Virus record (IMG/VR): IMGVR_UViG_3300017991_000048
Coordinates: 186,001-250,000 of that record
Direction: 5' to 3' (one strand)
DNA length: 64,000 nucleotides
The position numbers and the translations under genes are program-made. How positions within the stretch are numbered: position 1 is the first letter of the stretch; every line of letters starts with the position of its first letter. The notes beneath the pieces were generated by a model, which worked only from the letters and a program-made list of their open reading frames with translations, did not search any database and was not told the DNA's origin. Positions 2,704 to 60,385 of this stretch are shown in pieces.

Positions 2704-4758
2704 TTACTCCGCAACTGAAAAATGCTTCTGATGGCCAATATATCTACGTACACGTCTGTTTTTGGTTCTTCCGTACTCTTCCGCTACCTCCATCTCGTGC
2801 CAGCGGTGCGTGTCATCAAAAATGAGAGGCACGTCATGTCTGAATAAATCGAGGTGATGTAAAAACCCTCTTCGCCCTCCGTCTTGTTCGGTCAAAGCAT
2901 CCAAAATAATCAGGCTGTACTCTTCCGGTATCTTTATCTTATTTACATCGAACCAAATATGATCGCCATAGTCCTTGAGAGGCGCGTGAATAAAAGTCGC
3001 GTCTTTGGCAAGCATCCATTTCTCATGACACTCTATGGAAACGACATTATAAAATTTGCACAGTTCGGTTGTCCCGATTCCAGTGCCTATCTCTATAATG
3101 GTAGATCCACGAGGGATATTTTCGAGTATCCAATAGAGACACTCCTCTGAAAGCGCGAAGTTGTTGAGATTGCACTTGGCCACCTCTGGTGGAAACTCAC
3201 CAATCTTATACCTCAAAAACTCTTGTTCAGCTTTGTCAGCTTTTGCGAGATTTTCCTTACCCTCAGCAAAGGCTCTATCTTGTGGAGTAATGGATGAACC
3301 CCACCCAGGCTCAGCTTCATGGAAATCAAAGTCAGGCCAATAGGGGCTGTTCTCACCTCCCCTTCTGATTAAATCCAAGCAACAGATAAGCTTTCTCACA
3401 TTTTTAACTGTCACATACAGGCCAAATGGTGAATAGCCCTGATTGTAGATCTTTTGAGTCACGCAGAAATGCCAATCTGATAACATTGGCAAGTTTTTGT
3501 TAAAGTTTTCAAGTTCCCCGTAGACGCTTTTATCAAAAGCCATCAAACACCCTGTAGCGCCTTTGAATTGCACCAGATCATCTATGGTTTTGAAATACCT
3601 TATGTGAGTAAGACGTCCTTCAATAAGGAAGAGTAGATGCTTTTGGCCTTTGTTCATGCCTTCAATGAAAGGGGTGTGCCAGTTGGGGTGTACCGGAAAA
3701 GTGTCATCGTCGAACCAAAACTGATAATCACAGTCTTTGAGCATTTGGAAAGCTTTATGCTTGGAGTGTGAAACCCCCATTCTCTCCTCGTTATAAACAT
3801 AATCAATGTAGCCCAACCTCTCACAGAACTTTTCTTTGTGTCGGGCTTCCGCTGGCTTTGAGTTGTCATCTATTACGACTACCTTAGTTTTATAGTCTGT
3901 AGGCAAGAATTTGTTTAGGTACCTCAACGCATGTTTAAACACTCTCAACCGATTTCTAGTGGTATAGCTTATTCCAATTTTCATATGCTTGTCCTCTATA
4001 TCCTTTATTTGCTTGCGAAGACGTTTGCTACAGTCGCCGTAGGTCGCCCCGATAAGCTTTGTGAAAGCTTCATACGATGCTCGTTTTCCCTCAGGAGACT
4101 TCTTACGCTCTGCTAAAGTGTAAGCTGATCGATGCCGTTGTATTTTACAATCGGCGGGGACGCCGTCTAAATCAAAAGAATATATATACCCACCTGGATT
4201 TGCGATAGTGGCACACCACCAAATGGTATGACCTCGATCATACATCTTTGTAGTAAGGCCGAAATGCCAAACTCCGTAGATGCCAAACCCTTCGTTAAAC
4301 CCTTCGATATCCTTATACGTGTCCTTGTGGAAAGTCATTAGACACGCAGTGACCCCATTAAATACCTCAAGACCGTCCACACGTTTTACGCATTTGAAGT
4401 TTAACCATTTACGCATATAGAGCAGATGTTTTTGCCCTTTATCCATTTCGTCGATAAACGGCTCATGCCACCCCTCACAAATTGGATAACAATCATCGTC
4501 AAACCAAAACTGGTAATCACAGTCCTTGAGTAACTGAAAAGCCTTGTGCTTGGAATGTGGTATACCTAACCACTCTTCGTTGTACGCATATTCAAAACCA
4601 CGGCTGAGTTCAGCGTTTCTGTCACGGTGTACGCTATCACTGTTGTCATCAATAACTACAACTTTTGCGCCTTGAGGTAAAAACTCGCGCACCTTCGTTA
4701 ATGAATATTCAAGAGCATCAGGGCGGTTCCTGGTAGTATAACTTATGCCAATCTTCAT
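2704..4758 (-). CDS. tandem GT2 + GT2 glycosyltransferase with C-terminal methyltransferase domain
   Basis: Two copies of MKIGISYTTRNR...VVVIDDNS...DCDYQFWFDDD (GT-A DxD). C-terminal IEIGTGIGT...SIE...IILDA...IFDDT. Confidence 0.85.
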   Translation of the reverse strand: MKIGISYTTRNRPDALEYSLTKVREFLPQGAKVVVIDDNSDSVHRDRNAELSRGFEYAYNEEWLGIPHSKHKAFQLLKDCDYQFWFDDDCYPICEGWHEPFIDEMDKGQKHLLYMRKWLNFKCVKRVDGLEVFNGVTACLMTFHKDTYKDIEGFNEGFGIYGVWHFGLTTKMYDRGHTIWWCATIANPGGYIYSFDLDGVPADCKIQRHRSAYTLAERKKSPEGKRASYEAFTKLIGATYGDCSKRLRKQIKDIEDKHMKIGISYTTRNRLRVFKHALRYLNKFLPTDYKTKVVVIDDNSKPAEARHKEKFCERLGYIDYVYNEERMGVSHSKHKAFQMLKDCDYQFWFDDDTFPVHPNWHTPFIEGMNKGQKHLLFLIEGRLTHIRYFKTIDDLVQFKGATGCLMAFDKSVYGELENFNKNLPMLSDWHFCVTQKIYNQGYSPFGLYVTVKNVRKLICCLDLIRRGGENSPYWPDFDFHEAEPGWGSSITPQDRAFAEGKENLAKADKAEQEFLRYKIGEFPPEVAKCNLNNFALSEECLYWILENIPRGSTIIEIGTGIGTTELCKFYNVVSIECHEKWMLAKDATFIHAPLKDYGDHIWFDVNKIKIPEEYSLIILDALTEQDGGRRGFLHHLDLFRHDVPLIFDDTHRWHEMEVAEEYGRTKNRRVRRYIGHQKHFSVAE

Positions 4759-5651: not shown

Positions 5652-6524
5652 TTAGCGACCTAAAGTTCCAGCAGTGTACAACTCACTGGCATCAAGATGA
5701 CTATCCTCTAAGCAATAGGTTTCGTTGATCTCAAAAAGCCGTCCGAGATAAGCCTCTACACCATGAGACGACGGGTGTACGTTATACCACTCCTTTGAGA
5801 ACAACTTCGCATGGTTTACCCACCAAAATGTTCCAGAGTAATGCCACATAGAATCCAACGGTAAAGGGATTCTCGGTTCACAAATTTGGAAAGAACCGGC
5901 ACACGCAAACTGTGAAAGAACCGCTTCAATTAGCTCCATGTTGTGTAGACACAACTCATACATCTTGTCCCGCCAAACTCTGACGGCATCCAAAACAACC
6001 GGGTCATCGTGTGTCACGCCTTTTGTGTGAGCAAAAAATGTGATCTCGTCTTCACGTTCAGATTTAAGCCGTGCTAACGCCTCCGTAAAGCCAACAACTT
6101 CCCGCAGTTCTGGTACGTTGGTGCAACGTATAAATTCAGCTTCAAAAGTGAACGCAGCTTCAACTGTAGCCGGGTCCACTATGCCCTCTCCTGTCATTAT
6201 TATTACAATACGCCGTCCATTGAATATATCTGCATACCCGTTTATTTGCTCAATATTTCTTTTCCACTCATTAGACTTTTGGAAGGCACCGCAGCTATAT
6301 ATAAGGTTTCGCTTCATTAAGGCCGAAGACTCTGTGCGCGGGACTTCAACCTCTGGCCGAACACACGTTAGCCTCTCTATTATTACTGCCTTTCGTTTGA
6401 AGCAACGTTCACAAACTTGAACGCTCTTAGCGTTGGGTTTTATCTTCTTCTCGTAAGTATGCCCACAAGCTTCACATTCAAAGCGAGCATTGGCAGCATA
6501 TAAATCTATGTCATGCAGCGGCAC
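5652..6524 (-). CDS. Zn-ribbon + putative glycosyltransferase-like (HTKG/GxFWW) protein
   Basis: N-terminal CEAC...CERC; FAHTKG, WRDKM, HYSGTFWW, EAYLG. GAGGA RBS before GTG. Confidence 0.5.
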   Translation of the reverse strand: MPLHDIDLYAANARFECEACGHTYEKKIKPNAKSVQVCERCFKRKAVIIERLTCVRPEVEVPRTESSALMKRNLIYSCGAFQKSNEWKRNIEQINGYADIFNGRRIVIIMTGEGIVDPATVEAAFTFEAEFIRCTNVPELREVVGFTEALARLKSEREDEITFFAHTKGVTHDDPVVLDAVRVWRDKMYELCLHNMELIEAVLSQFACAGSFQICEPRIPLPLDSMWHYSGTFWWVNHAKLFSKEWYNVHPSSHGVEAYLGRLFEINETYCLEDSHLDASELYTAGTLGR

Positions 6525-8186: not shown

Positions 8187-8196
8187 TTACATCTCC

Positions 8197-9852
8197 CTAA
8201 ATAACGTGCCAAGCGCCATTTATGAACTGGAAGTCTACCGCGACGAGGCCAATGCCAATGGTGAAGCTTGCCACCAAAGCTCCAGCTACCGGGTCTTCTA
8301 TATTATTACCGTTACCGGAAATGGTTATTACAGTTGTGTTTGTCGTAACATTCTTAACAGAGAAATGATCACCGCTACTGGGTGTTGCCGGGGCATTAAT
8401 AGTAAACGTGCCGCCGCTAGGATCATAAGCTTCTCTATAGCCGATCTTTGCGGTGCCTGTTGTGGTACGCACGGCACTTGGTTGCAGTTCCCCTACGTAA
8501 CGCCACCCGTTATAAGCAGCTATTCGTAATAGTCCTTGAACCTGAGCCGGGTGATCCAAGTCTGTAACCATAAGACCACCGAAAGCGACATCCGTGGGAT
8601 CGTCGTCTTGCGGTACGATACGCAATGCCGGGTAAGCAGGGTTGGTGAAATCGCCTTCGGCCTCTACGCCTATGCCTGTTGCGGTACTACCCTTGACACC
8701 ATATCTGACACCTGTTCCATAGACTCCTATGCTACTCGCCCCAGTGCCTATACCATGGACACCATGAAAACCTGTGCCCTGGACACCATAGCCTATTGAT
8801 CCACCAGCTACACCTTCAACGCCTGGAGTATTACCACTCGCTCCGCCTGTACCTTTGACACCAATACCAGTGGTGCCACCACCTTGTCCTTCAACACCAG
8901 TACCATTGCCTGTAGTACCGCCTAATCCGTAAACGCCCTGGCTTGCAGGAGTTGGTGCCGGGTCTGCAAAATCACCGCCGCCTATGACACCAATTCCGTT
9001 ACTGCCACCGCCCCTACCTTTGACTCCGGTGCCCGCTGCTAGGCCGCGCCCTTCAACACCGACTTTATTACTCGCGCCCTGGCCGAAAACACCCTGACCG
9101 TCAGCCGTGGGGCTAGGGACTCCTCCGCTTCCCCCAATAACACCAATACCAAGGCTGGCACCGCCTGCGCCTATGACTCCAGTACCGTTACCAGCGGATT
9201 CACCTAAAATAGCATTATACCCAGATCCGCATGTGGCGTACACGGCTCTGGCGGTTGTCGATTGTGCCCGCACACCGATGCCAGCACCAGTACCAACGCC
9301 TTGCACACCTATGCCGTTAGTTCCGCCTGTGCCCTTGACGCCAACGCCGTTAGACCCGCCGCCCGTGCCTTCAACACCAGATCCGGTACCAGCACCGATT
9401 CCTTCAACACCGATACCATTTGTAACACCGCCTGTACCTTTCAGTCCGGTGGAATTGCTGCTGCCGCCTGTACCCTCAACTGCAATATTCGCGTCATCAG
9501 GCGTAAAAGTCTGTTTCTTAGTCCAGGTGTTCGCAACATCTAACTGAACGCCGCCTGCAATTGACACCTGAGTCTTGCCACCAACATCAGCCGCTGTGAC
9601 ACCAGGACCCACGAAATTCATAGCGGATCGTTGAGTTAACGGGGTGCCTTCATCCTCAACTGTAGTGTACCCACCAGCTATGGGGGTTTGCCATTCATAT
9701 TCAGTAGCGCTGGTAGCTGTGGGAACCTGCCCTGCTGTGGGAGGGGCAGCGGTTTTACTGGATACCGGATCTCCAGTGGTGGCTAATTCGGTAGCACCAT
9801 ACTGTCCGGGATCGGGTTGTTCTTTACTGGCCTGATTATAGCGTGTGGTCAT
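8197..9852 (-). CDS. Gly-rich tail fibre-like protein
   Basis: Many G(V/I)xGxG repeats, the fibre motif ANTWTKKQTF, and a C-terminal DPSGGTFTINAPATPSSGD domain of the kind seen in phage fibres. GGGAG RBS favours ATG 9852. Confidence 0.65.
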   Translation of the reverse strand: MTTRYNQASKEQPDPGQYGATELATTGDPVSSKTAAPPTAGQVPTATSATEYEWQTPIAGGYTTVEDEGTPLTQRSAMNFVGPGVTAADVGGKTQVSIAGGVQLDVANTWTKKQTFTPDDANIAVEGTGGSSNSTGLKGTGGVTNGIGVEGIGAGTGSGVEGTGGGSNGVGVKGTGGTNGIGVQGVGTGAGIGVRAQSTTARAVYATCGSGYNAILGESAGNGTGVIGAGGASLGIGVIGGSGGVPSPTADGQGVFGQGASNKVGVEGRGLAAGTGVKGRGGGSNGIGVIGGGDFADPAPTPASQGVYGLGGTTGNGTGVEGQGGGTTGIGVKGTGGASGNTPGVEGVAGGSIGYGVQGTGFHGVHGIGTGASSIGVYGTGVRYGVKGSTATGIGVEAEGDFTNPAYPALRIVPQDDDPTDVAFGGLMVTDLDHPAQVQGLLRIAAYNGWRYVGELQPSAVRTTTGTAKIGYREAYDPSGGTFTINAPATPSSGDHFSVKNVTTNTTVITISGNGNNIEDPVAGALVASFTIGIGLVAVDFQFINGAWHVI

Positions 9853-17260: not shown

Positions 17261-17323
17261 CTACATCTCCCTTAAGATGAACCTTGCAATCCAGGTATTC
17301 CATAAGAGAAAACAAAAGCTGAA

Positions 17324-51402: not shown

Positions 51403-52686
51403 TCACTTCCGGAACGGCTTCCCTGGTGGCGTCTGACGTCTGGGCAAAGGGATAGCTTCTGAAGTGTCCCGGTCTGTAGTAGCAATCTCAGTAGAGATTT
51501 CTGGCCCTTTGACGCCCCATTTGTCCAAAAAAGCATCCGTTTTTTCATCCATGGGATGAACTTGCATACGTGCGGCGTTTTGAGCCTCGATTTGCTTTGT
51601 ACGTCGAATTCTCTCTTCTACCTCTTGTGGGCTCAAACCATGTATCTCGGAGCTTCCGACAACATTCTTGTTTCCAAACTGCTCCGCATGAGCTTTTGCC
51701 GCTTCCTGCTGTTGTCTCTGTCTGGCTCTATACTGGTTCTGAATTCGCTTCTCATGCTCTTCGACCACCTTGTCGTGCCAGTCCTGGTCGCCTCTTAGAT
51801 CCTTCTCCAACTGATCCGCCAGTTCCTCAACACTGCGCGGCACCGTAACAACTGCACCGGGGAGTACAGCACTCTTTTCCGGTACTTTCTCCCCAAGCAC
51901 TATTTCCCGTAAAAGCTTGTCTTTCCGTGATATCCGCTCTTCTTTCTCCTTGTTTCTCCGATCAGTGTCCTGGCTGTAAACTTTGGACAAACCCTTCCCG
52001 GCAAAGCATGAGCCGATAAACTTGGCATTTTCCCAGTCCCTCTCATGCTGCTCATTACGGTCTTCTGCCAAATTCAAGGCTCTCCATACCTGTTGTGCCC
52101 AGTTGAGCCCCAAAGCTTGTGTTCCAACGACTCCAGTGACCGCCGTGGATGTAAGATCCAGCCCTTTAAGCTGCATCCAACGGTATCGAGAAGCTGATTC
52201 TGTAGCATAAGCTTCCGTTAGAATGGTCGCACTTGAGGCCCTCCGGTTGATTTCGGAGACGTGCCGAATGATCTTGGCTTTGCCTTGTTTGGGAAGCTCT
52301 GAGAAGGTGTCCGCTATTTTGGGTATCCATTGATCGCGGTCAGCCAAGACATTGACGCCATCGACCATAAACACCTCGTAAGCCAAAAAGATGTCCCAAA
52401 ATCTATGACTTGAGTCCTCTCGCTCCTGTTCCTTGAGAAGCCCTGCAAACCTGAGCAAGTCGAACTCATGGTGGTTCACACTTTTGAAAACAAAGTAGAC
52501 GTTATTAATTTCCGCCGCTACTGTAAGAAACCCACGGAACAGCAGGGGTTCAACGTCCTTGTAAACTTCCGGGTTTACCTCCGGAGCTTGAGGGGGAGTG
52601 ACACGGATATCTTCTTTAGGCTTTCCGTCATACTCACTCTTAAGCCGTCCTTGTTCCAGTTCATAATTTCTAGCTGCATCAGTCAT
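51403..52686 (-). CDS. probable tail assembly chaperone 2
   Basis: Position between chaperone 1 and tape measure; TGATG overlap. Confidence 0.5.
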   Translation of the reverse strand: MTDAARNYELEQGRLKSEYDGKPKEDIRVTPPQAPEVNPEVYKDVEPLLFRGFLTVAAEINNVYFVFKSVNHHEFDLLRFAGLLKEQEREDSSHRFWDIFLAYEVFMVDGVNVLADRDQWIPKIADTFSELPKQGKAKIIRHVSEINRRASSATILTEAYATESASRYRWMQLKGLDLTSTAVTGVVGTQALGLNWAQQVWRALNLAEDRNEQHERDWENAKFIGSCFAGKGLSKVYSQDTDRRNKEKEERISRKDKLLREIVLGEKVPEKSAVLPGAVVTVPRSVEELADQLEKDLRGDQDWHDKVVEEHEKRIQNQYRARQRQQQEAAKAHAEQFGNKNVVGSSEIHGLSPQEVEERIRRTKQIEAQNAARMQVHPMDEKTDAFLDKWGVKGPEISTEIATTDRDTSEAIPLPRRQTPPGKPFRK

Positions 52687-53753
52687 CAAACTTTAGCTGG
52701 CGGCTTAAAGCGCGGGTTGATTCCCGCCGCTGGTGGTCGATCAATAATCTCACTGATCTTTTTCGTGTCCACAGGCTCTTGTTTCCGAAGCTCTGCAACC
52801 TCTTGGTCAGCCGGTCGCTGAACCGGGATTTGCCCATTTCCTTCTTCAACTTTAACACCTAGTGTTCTTCCCGCCTCTGCCTCAAGAGCCGCAATCTTGT
52901 CAGTGCGGCCTTTAGACGTGTCTCCCTCTTGGCTTTGAGACGGGGCTACTCTCCGTGCCTCAATAGCTTGTTCCAGAGTCTGGTGAGGGTCGGTTGGCTC
53001 CGGTGTTGCCCGATTCATGGGTTGTCTCGCCGCCTCTGGCTCAGGCTTCGGTTCGGCTTTGGGCTGCGGCTTAGGTTGTTCAACTTCGGCTTTGGGCTGC
53101 GGCTTAGGTTCCGGTGTCTTGGCGGCATCGTCTTCACGAGCCATCCGGTCTATACGTTCAGTCGCCGCTTTTACTTCCTCAGTGGTGCTTCTCCGCATAA
53201 ACCCTTGCTCTTCCAGGATATGGTCAATGAGAGAGTCTGGCAGATTACCTTCGCTCTCTTTGGCTTCCAGTAATAAGCGGCGATATTTCTCTTCGTCAGT
53301 CTCATCTGGCAGTAAAAACTCGATCCCCTCTTTGGCCTTCCGCTCTGCCATTTCCACCACGTCTAAGAACTTACGGTAAGCTGTGTAAACAGCCTCTTTG
53401 CCCCAAGTGTTCACCACATGCTTGAGCAGGTATGAGTGAAGTTCTGTTTTAACAATGCGTGTTCCCCCTGGATTCTTGGGGTCCGGTTCTTCCTCTTCGA
53501 TATACTTAACACCTTGCAGGTCCATGCCATTGACCTGGGTGATAGACCGGGCAAGGTGCTCAGTTTGGTAGACATGAAGATACGACACGTCATCAAGCTC
53601 TTCACAAGCCTGTAGAATGGCGACGTACTCTTCAGGGCGTAAGTTACGTAATGTAACTTCGCAGTCCTCTATTATGAACGACTCTTTGATTAGCCCTATA
53701 TCTTTGGCCTTATCAAGAGCCTCGTTGAGTTTCTTCGCTGCTAATGTGCTCAT
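52686..53753 (-). CDS. probable tail assembly chaperone 1
   Basis: Follows the tube gene; VTLRNLRPEE...LARSITQVNG; Pro/Glu/Lys-rich C-terminal half. Confidence 0.6.
   Translation of the reverse strand: MSTLAAKKLNEALDKAKDIGLIKESFIIEDCEVTLRNLRPEEYVAILQACEELDDVSYLHVYQTEHLARSITQVNGMDLQGVKYIEEEEPDPKNPGGTRIVKTELHSYLLKHVVNTWGKEAVYTAYRKFLDVVEMAERKAKEGIEFLLPDETDEEKYRRLLLEAKESEGNLPDSLIDHILEEQGFMRRSTTEEVKAATERIDRMAREDDAAKTPEPKPQPKAEVEQPKPQPKAEPKPEPEAARQPMNRATPEPTDPHQTLEQAIEARRVAPSQSQEGDTSKGRTDKIAALEAEAGRTLGVKVEEGNGQIPVQRPADQEVAELRKQEPVDTKKISEIIDRPPAAGINPRFKPPAKV
53052..53110. repeat. 26-bp exact direct repeat (period 33) encoding PKPQPKAE twice
   Basis: ttcggctttgggctgcggcttaggtt at 53052-53077 and 53085-53110. 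Confidence 0.9.
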
Positions 53754-53913
53754 ATCATCCTCACAAATTGAGGATGACAGCGTTAGAACTCGACGTGATC
53801 TACATTTGAGTCTGGGTTTCTTACCGCGCTACAACAAAATTTACATTTGGTCGGATCTAATCTGATTCACATCTAGTTAACCGCTGTCATCAAAGCGGTC
53901 AGTTAGACCGCTT
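53751..53913 (-). promoter_or_regulatory. candidate cis-regulatory RNA with four mutually exclusive stems, one hiding the RBS
   Basis: Inverted repeats 53906-53913/53893-53900, 53894-53901/53878-53885, 53882-53891/53773-53782 and 53769-53777/53755-53763. Confidence 0.7.
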
Positions 53914-54613
53914 GTATTGTATTACTGCTCTGAGCGAACCGGAGTGAGTAACCACTGCCAGGACCGCCGTTGTCCTCCACCGGAGCAAGTCCAGTGTCGA
54001 TAAATTCGCCGTATTCTGATACACCATCAATAATGTCAGTGACTGTTATGGAGCTAGTCTCAGCTACCACTGCTGTGTCAGAAACGAAACTTGCTGAATA
54101 TGAATTCATCCAACAGCCCTCAAAAAAGGTCAGCAACGCACGAGGGGTTACTATCGGATTATCAGCGTCCGTAGGGCCTGTTGTAACAGTGGCCGCAACG
54201 GATGTACCACTCGGATCTTGGAGAGAAGATAACTCCGAAAAAACCAATTCCTGCTTGATGTCGAAAGGCCAACGGTGGTGCTTCAAGCTCCGGACAAGAC
54301 CATCGATGCCGCCCTTATAACCGAGAATTTGGAACAGATTTGCTGTATACAGCAATGTCTTGTTCACACTCAGAGTCATCGGATCTGTAACATTAGGCAC
54401 TAGCTCAGCGATTTGATCACCGAAGCCCACGCCACGGATCGGATCAATCGTGCGGGACTCGTCAAATGTGAACTCCGAAATCACGCCCAACTGCTGGAGT
54501 CCCTCCGCTCCGACCGTGTAGCCATAAATCTTATTTTTCTGACTCACGGCGGCACGGGTGTTCGGAGCCGTACCCTGCCGGTAGATATAATTAGCTGTAG
54601 TTACGTTCGCCAT
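53903..54613 (-). CDS. tail tube protein
   Basis: GVISEF...ESRTIDPIRGVGFGDQIAELVP, PFDIKQE, FEGCWMNSYS...VAETSSITVTD; strong GGGAG RBS; upstream of chaperones and tape measure. Confidence 0.8.
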   Translation of the reverse strand: MANVTTANYIYRQGTAPNTRAAVSQKNKIYGYTVGAEGLQQLGVISEFTFDESRTIDPIRGVGFGDQIAELVPNVTDPMTLSVNKTLLYTANLFQILGYKGGIDGLVRSLKHHRWPFDIKQELVFSELSSLQDPSGTSVAATVTTGPTDADNPIVTPRALLTFFEGCWMNSYSASFVSDTAVVAETSSITVTDIIDGVSEYGEFIDTGLAPVEDNGGPGSGYSLRFAQSSNTIQAV

Positions 54614-54636
54614 ATTATCTTACATCTCCCATTTTG

Positions 54637-54657
54637 TAGTCAAACAATGTCTGACTA
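54637..54657 (-). other. stem-loop between the upstream stop codon and the tube RBS
   Basis: mRNA UAGUCAGAC-AUU-GUUUGACUA, 9 bp with one GU. No U-tract, so not a classic terminator. Confidence 0.5.
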
Positions 54658-56038: not shown

Positions 56039-59000
56039 TTAATCCCAATCGCCTTCCGGTAAACTCCAGGCATCGTCTTCGAAATCGTAAGCCGCCGTTC
56101 TAACAATTTCCTCTTCGATCATTTCTTCTCCCGGCTCAACGACCTCTTCCTCAACTATGGTTTCGTCTTCGGTCTCACCGGGTCTTTTGACATTCTCGCC
56201 AACGTGAAGACCGGCTTCAGCCACAAATTGACTGACTCCAGCCGGTTTCCCGCCCACAGTAGAAGGACACACAATAGTAAGATTCATCTCTGCCCGTGAT
56301 AAAGCCACATAACCGAGCCGTCTTTCCGATTCTAACTCTTCTTGTAACTCTTCTGGGTCGCGAGGTGGTGCCCCTGGCTTCTTTGGAGGTTCTATGGGGA
56401 ACTTACCTCTTGGCATGGCGACATAACAATTTCGCCACTCTGCTCCTTTGACTGAATGCACGGTTCCAATGTAAACACCGGGCGGAGGTTTTTGTTCCGC
56501 TTCTGGAAGCTCTTTTTGTTTCTCTTCCCACTTATCAATGTCAATCCGCAGTTCCTCAGTCTTGGCAGCATAACGATCCATTTTAGCTTTATAGCCTATT
56601 GGTGTATTTGGATCGGCAATCAAGTCATCGGGGTCTGTTGGATCTTTTTCCATTAGTTTATATAAGAAACTAACATTCCCCAGATTTTCTTCCTCTTCAT
56701 CCTCATCGTCCTTCGCATCGTCATCCTCATCAGAGATGCTATCTCTGATAGTAGCCTGAAGGCTCTCACGGAAAGACTGCTCTACGTACTTGATGTCGCC
56801 AGTTCCAGGCTCAACTATTGTCGTTGTCCCTCTCAACATAAGGATTTCGTCAAAAAGATCTCTCGTTGTATAGTCGGGGTCCATCGCGTTAGCTTTCATT
56901 TCAGCTACCGCATCACGCATTTCCTGGAGAGCCCTCACAGCCTTTCGCCATAACCCTCCTTTTTTACCCAAAGCTCCAGCCAAGATACCTAAAAATTCAT
57001 CGTCAGCTAAAGCGGCAAGAGGGTTTATTGTTTTAACATCTTGGCCTGTCTCGGTAGCCCACTTTTTAAGCGCATACTTAACTCCGTTCGGTCCTTTATC
57101 CCCAGTGAGGAAAAAACGGTTTGGTTTGTTTATGACCTCCCCCAAGGCTTCTTGCATTTTGGCAAAGTCATTACCTATAGCAAGATCAACATACCCCAAC
57201 ACCGCCTTTGTCTCTGGTGAGCCCAAAAAGCTTGAGGTGCCTTTACGGGCGTAAGGAACGCCGCGAATAATACAGGCTGTCTCGTAAGCGTGTTGTTCCT
57301 TATTTGTCCGGGTAAGAATGGCATTATCACTTACGTCAGCACCCGCTACCATGTCGCCTTTGATCTTCTCTACGACATCTAAAGCAGCTTGCGCCTCATC
57401 TCCGGGAGTTATGACATCAAGAGTCGCAACTCCTTTTTGCGCCCCTGGACGCGGAACGGACTTCATCGGGATCTGCTTTGTGTTATGATCAATTAACGTA
57501 TTGGCGGCTTCAACGATTTCTGGCTCACACCGATAATTAGTCCGGATAAATTTGGTTTCCCAACTCTTTTCTTCGTCGTCGTTCAACTCCGTAAACATAT
57601 CCGGACGCGCCCCGCGAAAACCATAAATACTATTTGATGAAAGAACCCCACCACCAAAAAAGTTAGAAGCATCGTTTATATCAAGATCAAGAAAGGTGTC
57701 TTCTACTTGTTCAACCTTCACAACTTGGTCTAAAACTAACTCACCGTCATCTATAACAGCCACCGACATACCTGGAAACAAAGCTGTTGCTGTGATCTTC
57801 CTAAGAGGTAGTTCATTCGCTACTGACAAACGATGTGATAAATTAAAACCTGTTACATCTTGTAGAGTTTCTGCAAACTCTAAACCTTCTCGATAATTTG
57901 TAAACCATTTACGAATTCTGCGTCTATTCTGACCAAAAAGCTTAAATTCAACTTCTACTTTATCGTCTAACGCCTCGTCTTGATCCCATTCAAGAGTTAC
58001 TTGAGTGCCTTTCGGCCCATGAGCAATAAGCTGGATCGTGCGAGACGCAAGAAGGCGGGAGTTTCGACACATCCAATTAGGGTAAGATAACTTAAGCCCT
58101 TTAGCCTCTAACAGCTTGCGTCCGTTTTCACCAAACTCTTTATAAACCGCTGCAATCTTTTCAACTGGAAATGTTCGATTCCACTCACTATGATATACCG
58201 CAGTTGGTATCTGGTAGCGCAATGAATAAAGAGCTTCTGCCGTATAAGCCTCTTCTTTAGAATTATAAATACCAAGAATCCAAAGACGTTCTGCTCTTTC
58301 TGTTTGTGGTCTTTGTCCATAGAGAAGACGAGAATCTTTCTCGCAAAAACCCTTATTTGTAACCCCGATCCGAAAACCTAAATCTCGTCGATGCATCAAA
58401 TAAAGAAGATGCTGCTCCTCTTTTAGCAATGGGTCAGAGGCCCAAATTTTATGATTTGGACTCATCGTGAGAACACGACCACCTTCTGTGGTCATTTTAA
58501 ATCCATTACTCCAATTAGATGATACAATGTGTTTAACTTGCTGAGGGGTAATCCCACCATTTCGATAAGCTAAAACTTCATCCCCCTCACAAAGATCCTT
58601 TGCCGCCTTTTCACCAGAAGGGGTAAGTATAGGAGTGTCAGAGGCCACACACTGCTTGTCATCCCCTACGATCCATAAAGACTTCCCATCACTGCCGTCT
58701 GTAACCTTACCCGCTATCTGGGAGATGACAGAATACTGGACAGCATTAAGGTCTTGAGCCTCATCAACAATGACATGATCAAACATGTCCTGTACGGTTT
58801 TACGGACACCAGCGTCTCGTTTCAGAATGTTATCAAAAATAGCTAACTGATCATCAAAGTCGCCCAAACGTTTAGCCTTACTACCGGCACCCCTGGACAT
58901 AAAATTTTCATACGCTTTGGAACGACAGGGCGGCTCCCAACCGGGAATGGCTCCCTTCACTCCTTCATACATCTCATACCAGTCTGCATGGTCGGCCTGT

Positions 59001-60346
59001 TCCTGAGTTTTAGCTAGCTCTTTAGCCTCTGCCGGGGTTATTCTATTACCTTTCCATTTTGACTTTGCTAAATTGGCGTCCTTGATTCTCGGTACTTTTC
59101 TTTCCGCTGAAGTGTTTGCTGGAAAACACTGTTGCCACATATTTTGAACAACTCTGGCCACTGAAGTACCTTTTCCAGTGAACCCTCGATTCATGGCCAG
59201 TTTCTCTGTTTTTGTACCAAACTTCTCTATAAAACTACGAAACAGCGAATGGGTAGTTCCAGCAAACATCTGCTTCAACGTGTCAGTGCTTGTCAGTCTG
59301 GCAATTTTCCGTTTAAGTTCATTAGCCGCCTTGGTATTGAAACTGGTTACCAAAATCCGACTCGGACTGACGCCTCTGTCCTTAACCAAATATTCGACTC
59401 TATGAACAACAGTACGGCTCTTCCCTGATCCTGCTCCAGCAGCCACCAGGACACGTCCATCAGTCACTGACGCTGCATACTGTTCAGGGTCTAAATCTCT
59501 CAAAGGAGCCGGTCGATTATTCGGACTGGAAGGATCAGTTGTAACGGACACCGCAGCCGCTGTAGCAATACCTACAACCTCAGACTTTGTTGGCGGCTCA
59601 TCTACTTCCCCGGATACCGCCATGGCTCTCTCGGCAGCGTCTTGAGCTTTTTCTTGCACATCCAGCAGACGTTCATTCTTTTCGGCTTCAGCATTTAGAT
59701 GATCTTCTGAAGCGGCCTCAGCGCCAGTTTCTTTGGCTCTCGCTGTAACTATAGGCTGAACATCGTCATCAGTCTCATCCGATGCGACTGCCACCGCATT
59801 CTGAAAAGTGCCAGACCCGGCTGTCTCTGCCGCTTTATCAATCCAGCCACGAAGCCTTATGTTCTTAAGGGGGATAACGGCGAACTTGTCAAGAGCGGCA
59901 TCAGCGTCCGCCTCATCAGCCGCTGCCATAGCTGCCCTCATCTCTCGCAGCGCTTTGTTGGACCTAAAAATCTTTCTCATGGTGGACGCGCCACCCTGAC
60001 GAAGAGCGATTTTCATCTGAAGACTACGCTTGCCCAAAGTTGTAGAGTTAGAAGGCAGAAAGCGAAACGCTTTGTCCATTATCTTTCTCTGGCTACTTGT
60101 CGGCATGGAATCGCCCAAGAAAGCTTGAATAACACCTAAATGCTGACGATCGGCCATTCTAACAAGCGTTAGACCCTTACGGATTAAGTCATCGTCGGAT
60201 TCCGAACCCGTCGCTTCTTCGAGGTAACGTGAGTATGTTTCCAGTGCGAGCAGGAATACAACGTACTCAGCAATTTCTAACTCGCCAATATCCTCATCGT
60301 CCACACCGACAGCGGCCTCGACAACACGCTTCGCAGAAATTGTCAT
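56039..60346 (-). CDS. uvrD: UvrD/PcrA/Rep SF1 helicase, intein-containing, with N-terminal extension
   Basis: AGAGSGKS, SFNTKAANEL, VDEAQD, VGDDKQ|SIYGFRGA, NYRC, TVHSVKGAEW, ERRLGYVALSRA. AGGAG RBS favours ATG 60346. Confidence 0.92.
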   Translation of the reverse strand: MTISAKRVVEAAVGVDDEDIGELEIAEYVVFLLALETYSRYLEEATGSESDDDLIRKGLTLVRMADRQHLGVIQAFLGDSMPTSSQRKIMDKAFRFLPSNSTTLGKRSLQMKIALRQGGASTMRKIFRSNKALREMRAAMAAADEADADAALDKFAVIPLKNIRLRGWIDKAAETAGSGTFQNAVAVASDETDDDVQPIVTARAKETGAEAASEDHLNAEAEKNERLLDVQEKAQDAAERAMAVSGEVDEPPTKSEVVGIATAAAVSVTTDPSSPNNRPAPLRDLDPEQYAASVTDGRVLVAAGAGSGKSRTVVHRVEYLVKDRGVSPSRILVTSFNTKAANELKRKIARLTSTDTLKQMFAGTTHSLFRSFIEKFGTKTEKLAMNRGFTGKGTSVARVVQNMWQQCFPANTSAERKVPRIKDANLAKSKWKGNRITPAEAKELAKTQEQADHADWYEMYEGVKGAIPGWEPPCRSKAYENFMSRGAGSKAKRLGDFDDQLAIFDNILKRDAGVRKTVQDMFDHVIVDEAQDLNAVQYSVISQIAGKVTDGSDGKSLWIVGDDKQCVASDTPILTPSGEKAAKDLCEGDEVLAYRNGGITPQQVKHIVSSNWSNGFKMTTEGGRVLTMSPNHKIWASDPLLKEEQHLLYLMHRRDLGFRIGVTNKGFCEKDSRLLYGQRPQTERAERLWILGIYNSKEEAYTAEALYSLRYQIPTAVYHSEWNRTFPVEKIAAVYKEFGENGRKLLEAKGLKLSYPNWMCRNSRLLASRTIQLIAHGPKGTQVTLEWDQDEALDDKVEVEFKLFGQNRRRIRKWFTNYREGLEFAETLQDVTGFNLSHRLSVANELPLRKITATALFPGMSVAVIDDGELVLDQVVKVEQVEDTFLDLDINDASNFFGGGVLSSNSIYGFRGARPDMFTELNDDEEKSWETKFIRTNYRCEPEIVEAANTLIDHNTKQIPMKSVPRPGAQKGVATLDVITPGDEAQAALDVVEKIKGDMVAGADVSDNAILTRTNKEQHAYETACIIRGVPYARKGTSSFLGSPETKAVLGYVDLAIGNDFAKMQEALGEVINKPNRFFLTGDKGPNGVKYALKKWATETGQDVKTINPLAALADDEFLGILAGALGKKGGLWRKAVRALQEMRDAVAEMKANAMDPDYTTRDLFDEILMLRGTTTIVEPGTGDIKYVEQSFRESLQATIRDSISDEDDDAKDDEDEEEENLGNVSFLYKLMEKDPTDPDDLIADPNTPIGYKAKMDRYAAKTEELRIDIDKWEEKQKELPEAEQKPPPGVYIGTVHSVKGAEWRNCYVAMPRGKFPIEPPKKPGAPPRDPEELQEELESERRLGYVALSRAEMNLTIVCPSTVGGKPAGVSQFVAEAGLHVGENVKRPGETEDETIVEEEVVEPGEEMIEEEIVRTAAYDFEDDAWSLPEGDWD
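57632..58651 (-). mobile_element. intein (340 aa) in helicase motif III
   Basis: Starts CVASDTPIL after GDDKQ; block B MSPNHKIW; ends FLDLDI...NFFGGGVLSSN before SIYGFRGA. Confidence 0.92.
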
Positions 60347-60385
60347 AATCAATAGCTCCTACTCGTCAATTAAACCAAAGGATAT

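Follow-up and report, generated by a model that had tools for sequence, protein, structure and literature searches.

The region analysed (the window) is a 64,000-nt stretch corresponding to bases 186001-250000 of a 398,071-bp virus record with direct terminal repeats (IMG/VR IMGVR_UViG_3300017991_000048), i.e. a huge phage. Genes at the locus run on the minus strand, and the feature of interest occupies a 149-nt gap (53754-53902) between a gene for a tail tube protein of 236 aa and a gene for a tail assembly chaperone (TAC) of 355 aa. The chaperone has more than 100 homologues, all unnamed, in contigs of up to 529 kb; its AF2 model (pLDDT 76.5, with the N-terminal ~140 residues above 90) has the HK97 tail assembly chaperone 2ob9 as its top Foldseek hit (probability 1.0, TM by target 0.58-0.60), and the Atlas gives TAC families as leads. 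For the 236-aa protein the Atlas places tail-tube families nearest (feature score 0.96; TM 0.61/0.65 to clusters carrying Phi812_tail_tube, with Phage_tube_2 and Phage_tail_2 also appearing; overall TM range 0.5-0.65), and PHROG 985 (virion structural protein) matches 25 of 42 homologues; an AF2 model of this protein was of low confidence (pLDDT 40) and was not used for a fold search. The protein is 60-85% identical among relatives, and its gene precedes the chaperone gene in 54 of 54 loci that could be checked. The features of the locus and its surroundings are collected in the table.

Features at and around the tube-chaperone gap (window coordinates unless stated; L227 and L228 denote the segments 250001-258000 and 273000-279500 of the same genome, numbered from their own first base)
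Feature	Position	Strand	Description
Tail tube gene	53903..54613	-	236 aa, directly upstream of the leader
GC-rich hairpin	53893..53913	-	Spans the tube stop codon; 8 pairs, 5-nt loop, then UUUG
P1 (stem C), 5' arm	53882..53891	-	GAUGACAGCG; pairs with 53782-53773
Array 1	53839..53880	-	8 RAY units at 5-6-nt steps (AAC, GAU, AAU, GAU, GAU, GAC, AAU, AAU); includes ARAUGURRAU copies 1 and 2
P2, 5' arm	53873-53867	-	GAUGUGA, inside copy 1
Variable centre	53815..53838	-	24 nt between the arrays, predicted to form small hairpins
Array 2	53797..53814	-	3 units (CAGAC, UCAAAU, GUAGAU), with ARAUGURRAU copy 3
P2, 3' arm	53792..53798	-	UCACGUC
P1, 3' arm	53773..53782	-	CGCUGUCAUC; last 5 nt shared with the anti-SD arm of the RBS hairpin
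RBS hairpin	53755..53777	-	UCAUCCUCA / UGAGGAUGA (53777-53769 with 53763-53755); holds the Shine-Dalgarno sequence, one base before the ATG at 53753
Tail assembly chaperone gene	52686..53753	-	355 aa, the gene the leader precedes
Chaperone stop/next start overlap	52680-52700	-	UGAUG; next ORF 428 aa, in the -1 frame
Antisense ORF	53617-53865	+	Mechanical ORF of 82 aa
Shared start regions	17261-17323, 8187-8200 and 54614-54640	-	GGGAG AUGUAR (R)AU(G), at the tube gene, a 214-aa gene and a 272-aa gene
T-rich motif	17308-17315; genome 277175, 256401 and 23852	-	TTGTTTTC
Helicase-like gene	56039-60352	-	1437 aa, PHROG 1967; between the sheath and tube genes
Tail sheath gene	L227: 2001-6287	-	1428 aa
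Sheath leader	L227: about 6288-6414	-	Five units at a 6-nt register (CCAGAC CCAGAU CCAAAC CCAGAU CGAAC)
Zinc-ribbon gene	L227: 6415-6840	-	~140 aa, immediately before the sheath leader
Third array-bearing intergenic region	L228: about 4080-4177	-	After a 370-aa gene (UAGAUG UAAAUG UAGAC UCAGAU ...)

The initial annotation had described periodic RRAU repeats every 5-6 nt in the loop of a stem C (53795-53876), including three ARAUGURRAU copies, and this observation is confirmed by the sequence. On the minus strand RRAT starts at 53874, 53868, 53863, 53858, 53848, 53842, 53807 and 53801 (spacings 6, 5, 5, 10, 6, 35 and 6), a ninth occurs in the RBS, and ARATGTRRAT sits at 53874, 53848 and 53807. 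Against 5000 dinucleotide-preserving shuffles of the 149-nt intergenic stretch, the 9 RRAT compare with a mean of 4.2 (P 0.0016), the longest chain of RAY triplets at 5-6-nt steps is 8 (P 0.0002), and three ARATGTRRAT copies occurred in 0 of 5000 shuffles (P <0.0002). ARATGTRRAT occurs only 10 times on both strands of the 398-kb genome, three of them here, and eight RRAT in 79 nt puts this stretch in the top 0.013% of minus-strand windows. If GAC and AAC variants are counted, the layout becomes 8 units, a variable centre and 3 further units. The near copy that the annotation had pointed out in the tube gene's own RBS is indeed present (GGGAG AUGUAAGAU AAU AUG), but only the nearest relative keeps it.

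The leader folds well (-52.2 kcal/mol, z-score -3.8), and the GC-rich hairpin, P1, P2 and the RBS hairpin appear in order along the RNA. The loop of stem C is thus not a plain open loop, as copy 1 pairs through P2 with the bases just after copy 3, a helix found in both the MFE and centroid folds. P1 and the RBS hairpin abut and share UCAUC, and the 5' arm of P1 repeats the GAUGA of the SD arm, so that the two helices can trade base pairs. The GC-rich hairpin, also present in MFE and centroid folds, has GC-hairpin counterparts after the tube stop in relatives; a terminator scan flags the same hairpin only on the plus strand, and its role as a 3' end stabiliser or weak terminator is inferred. 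The repeat units are slightly more often unpaired than the other loop bases (0.46 against 0.39, P 0.0007), a predicted accessibility only modestly higher than that of neighbouring bases.

A partial scan of viral contigs with a 14-mer (CGCTGTCATCCTCA) returned only chance hits, and relatives were instead collected by protein-guided locus searches, which gave 78 distinct upstream regions, or 66 after removal of near-duplicates (chaperones 31-64% identical). In the 19 closest the conservation is striking given that their chaperones are only 49-64% identical: the three long copies, P1 and the RBS hairpin align column for column, and the array 2 consensus CCAGACCCAGAUGUAGAUC is kept in most of the 19, whereas the sequence of the variable centre is not conserved. 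Across all 66 leaders TAGAT is enriched 24-fold, ATGTA 22-fold, AGATG 8-fold and CAGAT 6.5-fold, and the unit consensus is Y-A-R-A-U-S, the commonest units being CAGAUG, UAGAUG, UAGAUC and CAAAUG. RRAT distances peak at 5-6, 10-12, 15-16 and 20-21 nt and are almost absent at 7-9 nt, while coding DNA shows only a 3-nt rhythm. The longest periodic chain averages 4.5 units (maximum 8), against 1.7 in CDS and 1.9 in shuffles, and units in chains average 7.6 per leader, against 0.6 per CDS window; conservation of spacing, which had been named beforehand as a test, is therefore observed. The number of units varies from 0 to 13 with no sharp stoichiometric peak, a few relatives (those labelled L161 and L165) have lost the array in the chaperone leader, and in distant relatives the units run through the SD and the start codon.

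Several lines of evidence support an RNA-level element. P1 exists in most relatives in many sequence versions that stay complementary, as found by an independent search for its arms, and beats shuffles at P <= 0.05 in 33 of 63 leaders. A covariance model built from 19 sequences scores 124 bits on the sense strand and 19 on the antisense strand, finds further relatives only on the sense strand just upstream of the start codon, and has a single copy in this genome. In the 27-sequence model alignment 100% of P1 cells are paired, with double changes in 8-10 sequences at 3 of 6 pairs; 82% of P2 cells are paired, with compensatory GC/AU changes at one pair (18 against 6); and 96% of RBS-hairpin cells are paired. 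For P1, 0 of 500 shuffles reach the observed score and slid controls fall to 26-54% paired, although the alignment was fitted to the model and the counts thus lean towards the structure. Sense-strand G-U pairs in P1 (GGUGA with UCAUC) would be A-C mismatches on the other strand. An equivalent of the RBS hairpin with 6-11 bp is found in most of the ~30 closest relatives; the leader thus has the conserved hairpin of an SD-sequestering translational attenuator, in which the SD pairs with an upstream anti-SD next to the start codon. No promoter-like site was found in the gap. No Rfam family matches at gathering score over the whole window, the best hit at a permissive threshold being an unrelated sRNA at 23.8 bits against a gathering score of 55, and literature searches found no description of this element. 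The region is therefore inferred to act at least partly as RNA.

The arrays are not private to the chaperone. In this genome periodic chains of four or more units occur at five intergenic places, all on the gene strand within about 105 nt of a start codon, and the chaperone leader has the highest unit density of the 143 intergenic regions, the second-highest being that of the third region listed in the table. Another such place is the leader of the 1428-aa gene, which is the tail sheath by tblastn to annotated sheaths of Tunturiibacter phage Tunturi_5, Bacillus phage G and Gordonia phages; its homologues in 41 relatives also carry arrays, with a 5-6, 11-12 and 17-nt rhythm. Sheath leaders have arrays without an evident P1, and unit counts in the chaperone and sheath leaders of the same genome do not correlate (rho 0.10, n = 21), which is uninformative. 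A ~140-aa protein with an N-terminal zinc ribbon (PF09723, below the family cut-off) and a basic tail is encoded immediately before the sheath leader in about 37 of 41 relatives and is a candidate regulator by position only. The T-rich motif TTGTTTTC is over-represented in intergenic DNA (4 of its 16 minus-strand copies lie in 7% of the genome); it precedes the sheath leader and two other leaders and may be a late promoter or a terminator tail, but is lacking from the chaperone leader.

Blastn of the region against cultured phages found nothing. The closest cultured relative by tube and sheath proteins is Tunturi_5 (PP885688.1, 270441-283118; 309 kb, Acidobacteriota host, soil), in which the tube protein hits by tblastn a 'virion structural protein' (47% identity) lying in the same region as its tail sheath gene; it has neither the arrays nor a homologous chaperone after its tube gene, and gives only a weak hint about the host range of the clade. 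The placement of the helicase-like gene inside the tail module is unusual. The overlap of the chaperone's stop with the start of the next ORF, in the -1 frame, recalls the G/GT chaperone pairs of other phages; however, the -1 frame is closed two codons upstream and no slippery heptamer was seen.

The reading best supported by these results, to which a probability of about 0.45 is given, is that the stretch is the core of a conserved cis-regulatory RNA leader of the chaperone gene that would be transcribed together with the tube gene. In this view P1, with P2 inside it, encloses two arrays of Y-A-R-A-U-S units set head to tail, which would be the docking sites of an oligomeric or cooperatively binding RNA-binding factor, one unit per subunit as in TRAP on the trp leader; binding would change ribosome access to the chaperone's start site, either by shifting the balance between P1 and the RBS hairpin or by covering the start region directly. 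The repeats, their periodicity and conservation, the covarying helices and the identity of the flanking genes are established by the analysis, whereas that a protein binds at all, which protein it is and the direction of the effect are inferred. Because the sheath leader carries the same arrays, the putative factor most likely serves the tail module as a whole. Against this reading, no binder is identified: searches of the phage genome found no homologue of TRAP, Hfq, CsrA, RegA, S1 or S21. Part of the array is also base-paired, the unit number shows no sharp stoichiometric peak, a few relatives have lost the array in the chaperone leader, and the repeats alone cannot tell RNA binding from DNA binding.

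In geometry the element works most like the TRAP-binding sites of Bacillus trp leader and trpG/trpP mRNAs, where a run of about 9-11 short purine-rich triplets at 5-6-nt steps (triplet plus a 2-3-nt spacer) sits beside alternative helices, one of which hides the Shine-Dalgarno sequence; the 8 + 3 RAY units fit this register, and in some relatives the run overlaps the start region. However, the units have CAG and UAG followed by AU rather than GAG or UAG triplets (GAG-type units are a minority), no TRAP protein (PF02081) is matched in the phage genome at E <= 1, the element lies between phage tail genes, and there are two arrays split by a variable hairpin and partly paired. In logic it resembles the phage T4 gene 32 translational operator and T4 RegA targets, phage mRNA leaders in which a structured element flanks repeated short motifs reaching the start site and read cooperatively by a phage protein to repress translation; here the gene is a tail assembly chaperone and not a nucleic-acid-binding protein, the motif differs, and no RegA homologue is present in the phage. 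CsrA/RsmA targets and CsrB-type sponge RNAs likewise have many copies of a short motif (CAGGAUG in CsrB, CAGAUG here), with one copy at the Shine-Dalgarno sequence (GAGGAUGA), but the present repeats (AGAU or AAAU) lack the defining GGA, GGAU occurring only in the SD, the spacing is a tight 5-6 nt and not that of sites in separate hairpin loops, and no CsrA gene is in the phage. The register also differs from the 3-nt register of A-R-N triplets at an Hfq distal-face site, with almost no pairs at distance 3 and no Hfq gene in the phage. The phage P22 scaffolding protein offers a parallel only in the idea that an assembly chaperone absent from the finished particle limits its own synthesis after transcription; no periodic RNA array is known for P22.

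Two other explanations remain real rivals, although each is considered doubtful. In the first the element is RNA-only: the purine-rich units need no specific protein, and either keep a stretch weakly structured as a ribosome standby or enhancer site beside a closed RBS hairpin, or offer GAUG cores as alternative partners for the CAUC of the anti-SD arm, tuning how often the SD is free. Consistent with this, the 5' arm of P1 and the SD arm carry the same GAUGR, both can pair with YCAUC, and the three covary (GAUGA/UCAUC/GAUGA here; GAUGG/CCAUC/GAUGG in the relatives labelled L124 and L125); the strongest start sites in this phage read GGGAG AUGUAR AUG, so that the unit resembles a start region or the spacer of such sites; and units are somewhat less paired than their neighbours. 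However, a standby site needs neither a fixed hexamer nor a 5-6-nt register, yet both are conserved across very divergent phages; about a third of the units end in C (AGAUC, GAAUC) and cannot pair with CAUC; and the sheath arrays lack an evident P1. In the second, no less doubtful, the hexamers are direct-repeat DNA sites for a polymerising regulator of late tail-gene promoters, in the way Fur reads hexamer arrays or Ogr-type zinc-finger proteins activate late promoters, the zinc-ribbon protein being one candidate. The arrays stand in several intergenic regions ahead of tail genes, all in the gene's orientation, the zinc-ribbon gene adjoins the sheath leader, and the T-rich motif upstream of three such regions could be a promoter. 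On the other hand, in the chaperone leader the arrays lie inside covarying RNA helices with sense-strand G-U pairs, copy 1 itself takes part in P2, no promoter-like site lies between the arrays and the start, the T-rich motif is absent, and a 5-6-bp register puts successive sites on opposite faces of B-DNA.

The initial annotation's interpretation, a landing pad for an oligomer and possibly for unassembled tube rings or the chaperone in assembly feedback, is only partly supported. The conserved periodic spacing is what a docking array for an oligomeric or cooperative binder predicts, and the flanking genes are as proposed. That free tube rings or free chaperone bind the array and repress chaperone synthesis, like the autoregulation of the P22 scaffolding protein, is possible but unlikely on present evidence: the chaperone gene follows the putative operator and the tube gene precedes it, chaperones of this fold oligomerise, as does the HK97 chaperone, and the sheath, tube and chaperone start regions share the motif in this genome, but nothing shows that either protein binds RNA, the arrays in the sheath leader of this genome and of 41 relatives argue for a shared factor and against feedback private to the TAC, the tube RBS copy is not conserved, part of the array is base-paired and not displayed, and the phage encodes no TRAP or Hfq homologue. 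Smaller readings were also excluded: start-stop mini-ORFs in the three copies (AUG-UGA, AUG-UAA and AUG-UAG) are not conserved, relatives reading AUG-UGG or AUG-UAC; the loop letters of GNRA mini-hairpins (GAU-GUGA-AUC) vary freely; and mimicry of the 16S 790 loop (GAUUAGAUCC) is not conserved. Chance low-complexity sequence or the shadow of a coding frame (a leader peptide, or the antisense ORF) is refuted by the shuffle tests, the family-wide periodicity, the mix of 5- and 6-nt steps, the closure of all three sense frames, and antisense open frames that differ in length and overlap in every relative.

A bolder possibility, less likely than not but compatible with the evidence, is that a clade of huge phages uses an unrecognised RNA-binding protein of ring or helical geometry, encoded by phage or host, that reads arrays of YAGAUS hexamers in the leaders of the sheath, tube and chaperone genes, so that translation of the contractile-tail module would be set by one factor, possibly in response to the pool of unassembled tail parts; this would be a TRAP-like system evolved independently in phages. 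Huge phages are known almost only from metagenomes, and their gene regulation is essentially unmapped. The present work defines a compact RNA element of about 140 nt, with more than 60 natural variants, a working covariance model and clear helices and repeats, at the point where the ratio of tail tube to chaperone must be set, and the array could also help annotate tail modules in uncultured phages. If a protein reads the array, it would be a new periodic-repeat RNA-protein recognition system and a route to how megaphages balance tail components; if the array works without a protein, it is still a new class of phage leader RNA that is absent from Rfam.
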